Made by a program: the position numbers and the translations under genes
Notes under the pieces: generated by a model
Database searches by the model: none
What the model was told of the DNA's origin: nothing
The model's input: the letters and a program-made list of their open reading frames with translations, nothing else
Shown here: piece after piece, positions 48,446 through 52,330 of the stretch
Layout of the letters: every line of letters begins with the position of its first letter
Position numbering within the stretch: the first letter of the stretch is position 1
Assembly (NCBI RefSeq): GCF_006345805.1
Contig: NC_042997.1
Location: 160,084,001 to 160,148,000 of the forward strand
DNA: 64,000 nucleotides
Reading direction: 5' to 3'
Origin: Octopus sinensis
Taxonomy: Eukaryota

Positions 48446-48538
48446 CCTTTATTCTCGACATATGTTTCGAAGACAACATGGTTTCATTCCAAAGGAATAA
48501 ACGGTGCAAGATGCAATCTTCTCATCAGGAAAGAAAGG
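48446..48538 (-). ncRNA. Type I hammerhead ribozyme, intact canonical core
   Basis: cctttctttc-CTGATGA-gaagattgca...tgttgtcttc-GAAA-catat-GTC-gagaataaagg; palindrome ACATATGT; predicted cut between 48457 and 48456. Confidence 0.85.
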
Positions 48539-49053
48539 GGGCCTTTCTCAACAACAAGACAAACAAAAATTGCGATGACTGCCTACATGGTAAACAAAAC
48601 GATAATAAGTGTTTTTAAAAAAACTTATCCTTTCCCTTTGATAAAGACTGAAGATTTTGTAACATTTGCAACTCTGAACTCTTCTATATTCTCTTCTCTA
48701 AGGTCCCCCTTGTAAACACACTCATAGAGAAATCGTACAAATGTAAACACTGGCAGATACATACTTTTTACTCATATAAATGATTATGATAGTCATTGTT
48801 GTTTGAACAATTAGCTTAACGTGCACTCCACTTCAATAGCGAAATTCTTTCCTAAGCCTTTCAACATTCTATTAATCAACGTACCCTTCCCTCTCCACTT
48901 GTTCCCTGCCTATTATTCCTTTAACCCTTCTCTTCCTCTATCCAACTTTGACGTCAATTCTACTAACGGTTTTTAAAAAACACTTATTATCGATTTGTTT
49001 AACATGTAGGCAGTCATCGCAATTTTTGTTTGTCTTGTTGTTGAGAAAGGCCT

Positions 49054-49146
49054 CCTTTCTTTCCTGATGAGAAGATTGCATCTTGCACCGTTTATTCCTT
49101 TGGAATGAAACCATGTTGTCTTCGAAGCATATCTCGAGAGTAAAGG
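49054..49146 (+). ncRNA. Inactivated copy of the 48446 hammerhead
   Basis: Same sequence, but GAAA>GAAG (49127) and GTC>CTC (49133). Confidence 0.7.
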
Positions 49147-49452
49147 AATTTTGTTAACATCTTCGTTCAACTCCATTCATTGATTTATTCATATATAACA
49201 CTCAAATTTCTGTACATGAACCCGGAGTTTCTACATTTGGACAGGTCGCTTCAACCGTGTTTCTGACGTGAATTTGCTACACTGGTATCGGTTTATCGAA
49301 TTTTCCATATTGACGATAAACATAGGATAGTTCATTCTCCTATCGAAATATAAATGTAAATTTTAAAAAGGATAAAATCTTTATAAGAATTTATCAAGTA
49401 GTGTGAAAAACTTCATAAGTGAAAATATTATTAATTATTCCCTTTAAATATA

Positions 49453-49458
49453 TTTATT
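49453..49458 (-). terminator. Candidate polyadenylation signal of the lectin gene
   Basis: First AATAAA on the minus strand after the stop codon, about 250 nt downstream. The AT-rich context makes this weak evidence. Confidence 0.35.
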
Positions 49459-49519
49459 TATATTAAGGGCATTACTATACATAAATGACTCAGACTAGGA
49501 GGTACTCTTAAAGTCAAAG

Positions 49520-49580
49520 CTACCATAATAAACACATTGTACCGAACGCGGCGTTCGGTACAATGTGTTTACTATGGTAG
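49520..49580. repeat. Near-perfect palindrome, 30-bp arms, 1-nt spacer
   Basis: ctaccataataaacacattgtaccgaacgc-g-gcgttcggtacaatgtgtttactatggtag; one mismatch. Confidence 0.97.
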
Positions 49581-49706
49581 TCTCTCCTAGCATGCGGCAT
49601 TTATATATAATATATACATATATATATATATATATATATATATATGGGTGGGCACGTGTATGTGTGTGTGCGTGTGTGTGAAATTACGTTTCGTTTTACC
49701 ACACAC

Positions 49707-49945
49707 TTATCGAACAACTATCTCGCATATTTGTCTCCCACCGTTCTGGAAGTTGCAAACAATATCATTCCATCCGTAATTAAGGGATGGAATAAAGTTA
49801 CCGCAGTTTTCCTTCCCACCACTATTCGATGGTTGTGAAGGAATCCAAGGAGAATATGTAAGTGCTTCTCCATCCTGCCATACAAAGACGTTCTTGCTAG
49901 GATCTTTGCATAATCCCATAAGAAAAGTGTGTTGTTGCATCGCAG
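49707..49945 (-). CDS. C-type lectin domain protein, terminal exon (C-terminal half of CTLD)
   Basis: Acceptor tctctgtttgttttcag| (phase 1). Reads AMQQHTFLMGL...FVWQDG...YSPWIPSQPSNSGGKENC...WNDIVC...ICEIVVR*. Confidence 0.92.
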
Positions 49946-50790
49946 CTGAAAACAAACAGAGAATAAAAATATTGATTAATAAATAATCGTCTCGCACAGA
50001 TTTGATATGATTCGGTGCATGTTTGAGCATTATAGTGTTCTGTAGTAGTAGAAGTAGTAGTAGTAGTAGTAGTAGTAGTAGTAGTAGTTGTTGTTGTTGT
50101 TGTTTTTGTTGTTGTTGTTGTTGTTGTTGTTGTTGTTTTTGCTGTTGTGGTTGTTAATATTTAGCCCGAATCACTCATGACATCCTGTCTTATTTGTGTT
50201 TACATGGCGTATACTTGACTATATACTACATTTCGAGAAACAGTTGACTACCGTCTCTTGTAAGATGAACGATCACTCAGTGTACATACATTTACTCACT
50301 ATGTCGCTGCACACTTAGAATCCACATGTGATCCGCTTGTGTGCGCAGTATTTTTAGGCTACGTGAAAAATAGCGAAATATTTTGAATTTTGGCAAAATG
50401 AACCACATAAACTAGCGTATATAGTAATTTAAGTTGATTTGTTATATACGTCTGTAAAATAGATACTGAAATCTCTTCCCCGATCATGCCGGGAAGAAAC
50501 TTTCAGCAACGGTAACGAAATATTTCAACGTACACCAGGTTTTCATGTTTTTCATATATAAAATGAAATGAACAGCTAATCATTTGCTGATGCTGGCTAA
50601 TATAACAAGTAAATTATCTATTTCTTCTGTTTGCATCTAAATTCAAAACTAAACAGACTTAACCTTTCATATTATTGAAATTTAAAAGAATGACTGCGAT
50701 GAATTCGCTGATCAATTTAATCGACTCTAGCATTCTCCTGTAAGAATTGATATCGTGTTGATTAAAACCAAAATCAAAATTCAATGGGTG

Positions 50791-51090
50791 TTGTTTGTTC
50801 CTTGTCGAGCCACGCCTTGCTCATAAGGGCCGGTTTCCCGTTTTCCTTGGCGTATAGGTTCCCTGCGTGGACGGGACGCCGATCCGTCGTGAGTGAGTGA
50901 GCTGCGAGAGGAAAGAGTGAGAGAAAGTTATGGCGAAAGAGTCAGCAGAAGTTCGCCATTACCTTCTGCCGTAGACAGGTGGAAATTAGGAATTTCGCTC
51001 ATAAACACACACATCGCCCGGCCTGAGATTCGAACCTGCGATCCCTCGACCGCAAGTCTGCTGCTCTAACCACTAGGCCATGTGTCTCCA
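50791..51090 (-). mobile_element. SINE family 3 (tRNA-derived head)
   Basis: A box TGGCCTAGTGG and B box GGTTCGAATC, then about 220 nt of non-tRNA body ending in an (AAC)-like tail. Confidence 0.85.
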
Positions 51091-51769
51091 TAAAATTCAA
51101 ACATGGATTATTTCATTGAGACTATAATCATATTGTCAGTAATGTATCTGTAATAAGGCAACTCAATACTCTAACTCGACATGATACTATTGTTGTTATT
51201 AATATTAAAAAGTGTGTAGTCCGAAATATGTTCCATAATACGAAAAGATTGATTCAAAAGAAATTACATTCGATAAATTCTCTTTCTATTTATAACAACA
51301 CGATTTATAACAAAATATTTTCTTAGTTTCAAACAGAACAAAATCTAAAATAAATCATTACTTAAGTAATTTTTAACTGGCAAAGTCATTTTTTTGTAAC
51401 TCAATGACAATAAATGACAATATAAATGAAATCAATTGAGTGATTCGATATTTTCCACAAAAGTAGAGTGTAGAAATCAGAGAAACATTAAAAGAAAAAT
51501 AGAATTATATTTTTAAAATGGCAAGAAATTAAAATTTTGAGTGACAATGAATTGTTTTAGTTCATATTAGATATATCATGAGTACATTTGTATATATATA
51601 TATATATATATATATATATATATATATATATATATATATATATATATATATATAAATATATATATATATATATATATATATATATATATATATATTTATA
51701 TATATATATATATATATATATATATATATATATATATATATGTGTGTGTGTATATATAATTATTATTTG

Positions 51770-52330
51770 AGGGAATATAATCCAAACTTACAAGGAAAAA
51801 AAATTCAATTTAGAAATATTAAATCAAATTTCACACAATATAATATATATATATATATAAAATTAGAAAAAAGCACATTTTATCAATTCAAAACGAGCAA
51901 TTAAATTACACCATCTAGAAAATTACATATAATAGAAAAGTTAAAATTAAAATAACAATAAAATGTAAAGATTAAGTAAATTGCAAAAATAATAATAAAA
52001 ACGTATATAATAGGTGGAAAAACGACACGTGTTTCGCGGCTATATTTAAGAAATGATTATAGTAGTAGGGAAATCACTTCGATATAAATATAGTCGCTCA
52101 TCAGGTTTAAAATAAAATAGAACAATAAAATAATTAATTGATAAATATACTTTATATATATATATATATATATATATATGTAAATATATATATATATATA
52201 TATATATATGTATATGATATGAAAATCCTAAATATACATAAGTGAAAAGTAGAATAATACTTAAATAATTAAATACTTTAAAATTGAATAAAATACACAA
52301 AGCTAGTTTAAGTCATTAAATTGTAATCAA
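51770..52330 (-). mobile_element. PLE 3'-terminal (pLTR) segment
   Basis: AT-rich, (TA)n-flanked and carries a hammerhead; lies downstream of the same-strand PLE ORF at 54850-56590. Confidence 0.55.
52020..52108 (-). ncRNA. Type I hammerhead ribozyme, intact canonical core, intronic
   Basis: aaac-CTGATGA-gcgactatattt..gaagtgatt/aatcatttc..aaatatagccgc-GAAA-cacgt-GTC-gttt; palindrome ACACGTGT; predicted cut between 52024 and 52023. Confidence 0.9.

Follow-up and report, generated by a model that had tools for sequence, protein, structure and literature searches.

Two intact hammerhead motifs around the terminal exon of a C-type lectin gene in octopus probably derive from unrelated Penelope-like insertions

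The hammerhead ribozymes of Penelope-like elements (PLEs) are located in the pseudo-long terminal repeats (pLTRs) or near the 3' ends of elements that have a target bias for microsatellites and that frequently carry inverted, 5'-truncated copies (Cervera and de la Pena 2014, PMC4209133; Craig et al. 2021, PMC8557442). In vitro, single minimal PLE hammerheads have given no detectable cleavage, and their dimers have given low cleavage (PMC4209133). The retrozymes of metazoans that lack long terminal repeats (non-LTR retrozymes) have been proposed to be non-autonomous derivatives of PLEs (Cervera and de la Pena 2020, PMC7229834; Li et al. 2026, bioRxiv 10.64898/2026.07.22.740005), and a hammerhead is also known from a C-type lectin-like gene family of mammals: the Clec2 hammerhead, a single type III motif that is split by a helix I of 150-1500 nucleotides (nt), located within the 3' untranslated region (UTR) and conserved in several mammals (Martick et al. 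2008, as summarised in PMC6155905). Here, we have analysed a stretch of 64,000 nt from Octopus sinensis (contig NC_042997.1, positions 160,084,001 to 160,148,000 of the forward strand), which we refer to as “the window”, where two hammerhead motifs, HH1 and HH2, bracket the terminal exon of a C-type lectin gene in sense orientation. We consider it likely that HH1 and HH2 are hammerheads in the 3' ends of two unrelated, 5'-truncated PLE insertions, and that their sense orientation relative to the lectin gene is coincidental; coincidence in a PLE-rich region had been the fallback of the original prediction for this locus, and it is the explanation favoured by the repeat architecture, by the energetics of the motifs and by the loss of HH2 in Octopus vulgaris.

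Both motifs are type I hammerheads with an intact core, located on the minus strand at positions 52108-52020 (HH1) and 48538-48446 (HH2); the coordinates and the cores, as originally predicted, have been read directly and agree with our descriptor. In HH1, helix I is formed between AAAC (52108-52105) and GUUU (52023-52020), with 4 base pairs (bp), three of which are A-U; the CUGAUGA box is located at positions 52104-52098 of the minus strand, helix II is a long rod, and the 3' core is GAA-ACACGUGU-C, with C17 at position 52024 and with the 8-nt palindrome ACACGUGU as helix III. The helix I of HH2 is formed by a 5' strand (48538-48529) and a 3' strand (48456-48446), which pair through 4 bp, an internal loop and another 5 bp; its CUGAUGA box is located at positions 48528-48522 of the same strand, and its 3' core is GAA-ACAUAUGU-C, with C17 at position 48457 and the palindrome ACAUAUGU as helix III. 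All the core positions (C3 U4 G5 A6 N7 G8 A9, G12 A13 A14, A15.1-U16.1 and H17) are present in both motifs. The helix III of each has only two possible forms, a 2-bp stem closed by a 4-nt loop or an intermolecular duplex of 8 bp; cores of the PLE kind, with a short palindromic helix III, had been predicted at this locus, and such cores are typical of metazoan and PLE ribozymes. In the predicted folds, helix II is formed in both HH1 and HH2, the rod of HH1 being unusually stable (z = -4.5), and helix I of HH1 is missing from the minimum-energy fold.

The strict descriptor that we have used demands CUGANGA, at least 3 bp in helix II, GAAA, an 8-nt palindrome without mismatches, any base but G, and at least 4 bp in helix I; it has exactly two matches on the two strands of the window, HH1 and HH2, versus a single match in 8273 first-order Markov simulations of the window. 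A descriptor scan of both strands likewise leaves no sites but HH1 and HH2 when a short palindrome is demanded as helix III. One could argue that both motifs match a loose descriptor by chance and have never been ribozymes, given that the genome is rich in AT and in repeats and that Rfam is silent at both sites: its five hammerhead covariance models match neither HH1 nor HH2, either at the gathering score or at E<=10, over the whole window as well as over stretches of 231 and 831 nt, a miss that is likely caused by the 45-55-nt inserts in helix II together with the minimal helix III. The simulation already brings the chance-match explanation close to refutation, HH2 is duplicated inside a PLE-style structure, and the layout of both motifs is the same as that of the hammerheads of the PLEs that we have fetched (see below), so that its probability is practically negligible. 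In total, 12 CUGAUGA boxes occur on both strands of the window, three of which are those of HH1, of HH2 and of an HH2 copy. Two other candidates have been rejected, namely a CUGAUGA box at position 41510, which has no proper helices around it, and a weak Rfam match at positions 35669-35734 (HH9), which has no CUGAUGA box; a relaxed scan of the window for degenerate hammerheads, with one mismatch permitted in either box, has returned no more credible copies.

The two motifs are carried by repeat elements that end in microsatellites. HH1 is part of an element of ~293 nt (51859-52151, minus strand), with (TA)n on both sides and with boundaries that are placed according to these microsatellite flanks; its cleavage point is located 165 nt from the 3' end of the element, which lies in (TA)n. 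The 3' tail segment that follows HH1, which we call repeat X (51843-51952, minus strand), runs into (TA)n with its last 16 nt (51858-51843) and has a second, 5'-truncated copy in the opposite orientation (56558-56668, plus strand; 86% identity), which also ends in (TA)n and adjoins, head to head, the 5' end of a PLE open reading frame (ORF) remnant in the lectin intron. HH2 is part of an inverted duplication: arm A (48395-48622, minus strand) is the 3' end of the HH2-bearing element, arm B (48970-49197, plus strand) is its inverted copy, with 8 differences over 228 nt, and a spacer of 347 nt (48623-48969), in which no coding remnant has been detected, lies between them and probably belongs to the longer of two head-to-head copies. 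The arms are 96% complementary and are arranged head to head, with their outer (3') ends adjoining TA-rich microsatellite, (TA)n in the case of arm A; the cleavage point of HH2 is located 62 nt from the end of the element, next to (TA)n. The hammerhead of arm B (49054-49146, plus strand) has a broken core, GAAGCAUAUCUC, where A15.1 is replaced by G, in addition to one substitution in helix III (G to C) and one in helix I (A to G).

Local alignment of the HH1-bearing and HH2-bearing elements is no better than that of shuffled sequences, and the two have nothing in common beyond the core; therefore, they represent independent insertions. Alignment of either element with the regions downstream of the PLE endonuclease remnants of the window is likewise no better than that of shuffles, and no direct repeat of either hammerhead unit occurs in the window. 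Exact-pattern scans for HH1 and HH2 in metagenome and viral collections have found nothing, and a spurious 99-residue ORF across the HH2 arm, used as a protein-database query for further copies, has no homologues.

The region is PLE-rich, as had been proposed, with three PLE ORF remnants identified by tblastn. A 5'-truncated remnant in the lectin intron (54896-56570, minus strand) encodes the C-terminal half of a reverse transcriptase (RT) and a GIY-YIG-like endonuclease region, while two remnants on the plus strand encode the N-terminal part of an RT (45919-46498) and an endonuclease part (44049-44465). The tblastn comparison of the related proteins P0004-P0041 with the intronic remnant has given E values down to 3e-43. 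The relatives of the PLE ORFs of the window are proteins of 400-590 residues, in which an RT precedes a C-terminal CxC...YIG region, and this order of RT and GIY-YIG is that of canonical PLEs (PMC8557442). Pfam recognises neither the PLE ORF fragments nor most of their relatives, its sole match being a weak RVT_1 hit in P0005, and for this reason the PLE identity of the ORFs is based on the domain order and motifs of the retrieved proteins and on published descriptions. On the plus strand, the endonuclease part is located upstream of the RT N-terminal part, as would be expected if two PLE copies were arranged in partial tandem; between these two remnants, no hammerhead has been found.

Through the relatives of the PLE ORF of the window, we have fetched four PLE loci (L005-L008), and in all four of them a type I hammerhead is located 31-432 nt past the stop codon of the ORF, followed by a tail of ~35-105 nt and then by (TA)n. 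Their helix III is an 8-nt palindrome (L005), a 9-nt near-palindrome (L007 and L008) or a 3-bp hairpin (L006), and their helix II is a stem of 3-4 bp with a loop of 4-5 nt; in L005, an inverted, 5'-truncated copy of 315 nt, which includes the ribozyme, is arranged head to head with the main copy. The same architecture is seen around HH1 and HH2: each hammerhead is within a few hundred nucleotides of the end of its element and is followed by a short tail, and inverted 5'-truncated copies are adjacent, i.e. the 228-nt arms of HH2 and the inverted copy of repeat X that adjoins the PLE ORF remnant at its 5' end. An ORF with RT and GIY-YIG that is contiguous with the hammerhead end is found at neither motif, which fits extreme 5' truncation or a non-autonomous element, without proving either. 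Two further arrangements have been observed outside the window: L008 has two PLE ORFs (838-2298, minus strand, and 2501-4060, plus strand) head to head and 200 nt apart, which is another inverted arrangement; and in Octopus bimaculoides CM046609.1 (L004), a compact, canonical-looking type I hammerhead at positions 4101-4131 of the locus, with a helix I of 6 bp, a helix II of 4 bp with a 6-nt loop and AUAUGU as helix III, is located 6 kb upstream of a PLE ORF remnant.

According to the explanation that we favour, two independent insertions would have hit (TA)n microsatellites, in the last lectin intron in one case and downstream of the gene in the other. In the parent elements, tandem transcripts of the element would be processed by homodimers of such ribozymes, which form through the palindromic helix III; HH1 and HH2 would be solo copies at this locus, with no sense partner of the same family, and HH2 would also be trapped in a long hairpin by its own inverted duplicate, and thus both motifs are expected to be inactive or nearly so. 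The motifs fit the PLE layout structurally, and it is this architecture, helix II length aside, that points to PLE parentage of the two elements, which could equally be PLE-dependent, non-autonomous, retrozyme-like elements. Several observations weigh against PLE insertions of this kind: no RT or endonuclease coding remnant adjoins HH2 (none is found in 48623-48969), the nearest end of a same-strand PLE ORF is ~2.7 kb away from HH1, the 45-55-nt helix II inserts of both motifs are far longer than those of the compact hammerheads of L005-L008, and the Rfam models score neither motif. Moreover, no further genomic copies of the two elements have been retrieved, the family assignment being made by architecture and not by homology to a curated PLE consensus; the corresponding region of O. 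bimaculoides is uninformative, with assembly gaps over all three of the sites of interest (HH1, the terminal exon and HH2); and the inactivity of HH1 and HH2 is a prediction, not an observation.

The lectin gene is located on the same strand as the two motifs. Exon A (57032-56853, minus strand) is 180 nt long, encodes the N-terminal half of the C-type lectin domain (CTLD) and is in phase 1 at both ends, with a GTGAGT donor; the terminal exon, exon B (49945-49707, minus strand), encodes the C-terminal half of the CTLD, with a cag acceptor, in phase 1, and ends with a TAA stop codon (49709-49707). The two exons, when spliced, match Pfam Lectin_C (E=3.2e-13), and the closest proteins in the databases are from O. 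vulgaris and O. bimaculoides; exon 1 is beyond the end of the window and, in relatives, encodes a signal peptide and a cysteine-rich domain. HH1 is inside the 6.9-kb lectin intron and HH2 starts 1168 nt past the stop codon, which bears out the placement of a C-type lectin terminal exon between the motifs, with HH2 about 1.2 kb past the stop. Between the stop codon and HH2, there are three AATAAA hexamers, with start positions 49458, 49189 and 49096 (span 49096-49458, minus strand). The presumed 3' UTR also includes a near-perfect palindrome of 61 nt (49520-49580; 95%), just 3' of a (TA)n/(CA)n tract, which is present in O. vulgaris as well.

The orthologous locus of O. vulgaris (OX597814.1, locus L001) aligns collinearly with the window, with a local substitution divergence of 1.28%. 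HH1 is identical there (L001 27502-27582), as are the 240 nt around it; since the chance of zero substitutions in 93 nt at this divergence is P=0.30, the identity says nothing on constraint. HH2 is gone: a clean deletion of 1285 bp (47863-49147) at an AAAT microhomology has removed HH2, the spacer and most of arm B, of which 50 nt remain at the outer end; exon B is still present. The absence of both insertions from close relatives had been named beforehand as an observation that would speak against a ribozyme function at this locus, and the comparison gives one half of it, with HH2 deleted and HH1 kept in O. vulgaris. The O. vulgaris locus also lacks 55734-61250 (5.5 kb, including exon A; L001 24093-24151), which accounts for the missing half of the CTLD in its predicted protein, P0002; because exon A is found at the matching place in O. 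bimaculoides, its loss is on the O. vulgaris side. Considering the losses of HH2 and exon A together, the lectin locus is structurally unstable between very close genomes. The absence of HH1, exon B and HH2 from O. bimaculoides (L002) has been rejected as a finding, as runs of N (26942-28440, 29406-30676 and 32547-33252) occur exactly at the three orthologous positions and mimic absence.

Two other differences or peculiarities of the alignment with O. vulgaris are mentioned here. A SINE-like (short interspersed nuclear element) insertion of 232 bp (52488-52719) is absent in O. vulgaris and has related copies in the window (1764-1996, 27183-27347 and 15961-16070), which identifies it as an insertion that is either recent or polymorphic. 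Positions 42471-42638 of the window (minus strand) correspond to the final exon of the O. vulgaris model P0002 and encode an ..EPNPGP motif that we take to be 2A-like; motifs of this type are typical of certain retroelement ORFs. P0002 is probably a chimera of a gene and a transposon.

The original prediction proposed that HH1 and HH2 pair in cis through their helix III octamers in an unspliced read-through RNA, so that double cleavage would release the terminal exon as an RNA that may be circularised, providing control over the lectin. Much of its structural basis is correct: both cores are intact, sense-oriented and flank exon B, the interval between the cleavage sites (52023-48457) has the same length of 3567 nt when recomputed, the count of 6 Watson-Crick pairs, 1 G-U pair and 1 C-A mismatch between the octamers is right, and dimeric action via a palindromic helix III is established for hammerheads of this type (PMC4209133). 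The pairing itself, however, is predicted to be weak: the nearest-neighbour energies of the octamer duplexes are -10.3 kcal/mol for HH1:HH1, -7.0 kcal/mol for HH2:HH2 and only -3.0 kcal/mol for HH1:HH2, and the intermolecular helix III pairing probabilities in 105-nt co-folds are ~0.88, 0.13 and 0.000, respectively. In addition, a sense RNA that extends from exon B to HH2 must first transcribe the complement of arm B, and positions 49215-48380 are predicted to fold into a hairpin of -425 kcal/mol in which this upstream inverted arm pairs with 90 of the 93 HH2 positions, whereas the local fold of HH2 amounts to only -19.9 kcal/mol. With HH2 deleted and exon B retained in O. vulgaris, with three AATAAA signals ahead of HH2, with the known animal retrozyme circles measuring 170-400 nt and originating from tandem copies of the same family (PMC7229834), and with PLE minimal hammerheads cleaving poorly even as homodimers (PMC4209133), the cis pairing and the excision of the exon are not supported, and we regard them as extremely unlikely.

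The remaining possibilities concern each motif separately. HH1 alone may have been co-opted as an intronic hammerhead that acts on the processing of the lectin pre-mRNA, like the motifs of the amniote genes RECK, CTCL and DTNB: it is in sense orientation, intronic, intact and identical in O. vulgaris, with the unusually stable helix II rod and with a homodimer that is predicted to form (P = 0.88). The identity is nevertheless expected by chance at 1.28% divergence and extends equally to the flanks, the 4-bp helix I, with its three A-U pairs, is not formed in the minimum-energy fold, the transcript has no second copy of HH1 that could serve as a partner, and the loss of exon A from the O. vulgaris orthologue argues against a tight constraint on the locus; co-option of HH1 is, on balance, very unlikely. 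As for HH2, its 228-bp inverted repeat could be the functional unit, transcribed into a long double-stranded RNA for ADAR editing or for small-RNA pathways, as the complementarity of the arms, the 347-nt loop and the predicted fold of -425 kcal/mol would permit; there is no evidence of transcription at the inverted repeat, the structure is deleted in O. vulgaris, and PLE integration routinely gives rise to inverted copies of this kind (PMC8557442), all of which makes this role very unlikely. We assign a similarly slight likelihood to a broader scenario, where HH1 and HH2 together, or HH1 as a transient homodimer between nascent transcripts, would cleave the lectin pre-mRNA in vivo and thereby tune, or contribute to pseudogenising, a fast-evolving lectin, or where the HH2 repeat would be a source of double-stranded RNA.

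An arrangement of this kind may also be expected by chance, given the frequency of such motifs. About four intact motifs have been counted in ~190 kb of octopus DNA (the window and L001-L004), a small sample in which HH1 is counted twice, in the window and in L001; at a density in the order of ~1/50 kb, as this sample suggests, sense motifs that flank some exon within a few kilobases should be expected many times in a genome of 2-3 Gb. Under the exon-excision model, if it held, an invertebrate lectin mRNA would for the first time be seen to be controlled by ribozymes, with two unrelated hammerheads setting free a host exon; the evidence speaks against ribozyme control of the lectin, which is not supported. 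What the locus does offer is a clear example of the way in which PLE-type insertions scatter intact-looking hammerhead cores over introns and gene flanks, and it follows that the integrity of the core and the sense orientation are, by themselves, no evidence of function. The locus also indicates that these octopus elements bear hammerheads with very long helix II inserts, which are missed by the Rfam models, and that the structure of a lectin locus differs between very close octopus genomes.

Among the known systems, the amniote intronic type I hammerheads of RECK, CTCL and DTNB (PMC6155905) resemble HH1 in being intronic, located on the sense strand and similar to the hammerheads of retroelements; these motifs are conserved across vertebrate classes, whereas HH1 has been compared only with a genome that is 1.3% diverged. 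The Clec2 hammerhead is similarly associated with a C-type lectin(-like) gene, in its 3' region, but the convergence with Clec2 that had been suggested is a loose, superficial parallel: Clec2 has one discontinuous type III hammerhead within the 3' UTR (PMC6155905), whereas the octopus locus has two complete type I motifs that derive from transposons, HH1 being intronic while HH2 is located 1.2 kb past the stop codon, after the three AATAAA hexamers, and is absent from O. vulgaris. The metazoan non-LTR retrozymes (PMC7229834; bioRxiv 10.64898/2026.07.22.740005) are closer, being AT-rich elements of a few hundred nucleotides with one type I hammerhead, similar in size to the ~293-nt HH1-bearing element; they occur as head-to-tail tandems of the same family and as circles of 170-400 nt, whereas the window has no head-to-tail repeats of 170-400 nt that each carry a hammerhead, and its two elements are unrelated and 3.6 kb apart. 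The PLE hammerheads differ from HH1 and HH2 in the helix II of the fetched loci (3-4 bp with a 4-5-nt loop, versus inserts of 45-55 nt) and in the ORF, which is attached to neither element here, the link to PLEs being made by architecture. As described for PLEs (PMC4209133, PMC8557442), HH1 and HH2 combine an intact type I core with a short palindromic helix III that implies dimers, and the window shares with PLEs the position of the hammerhead near the 3' end of the element, the inverted 5'-truncated partner, the (TA)n sites and the PLE ORF remnants nearby.

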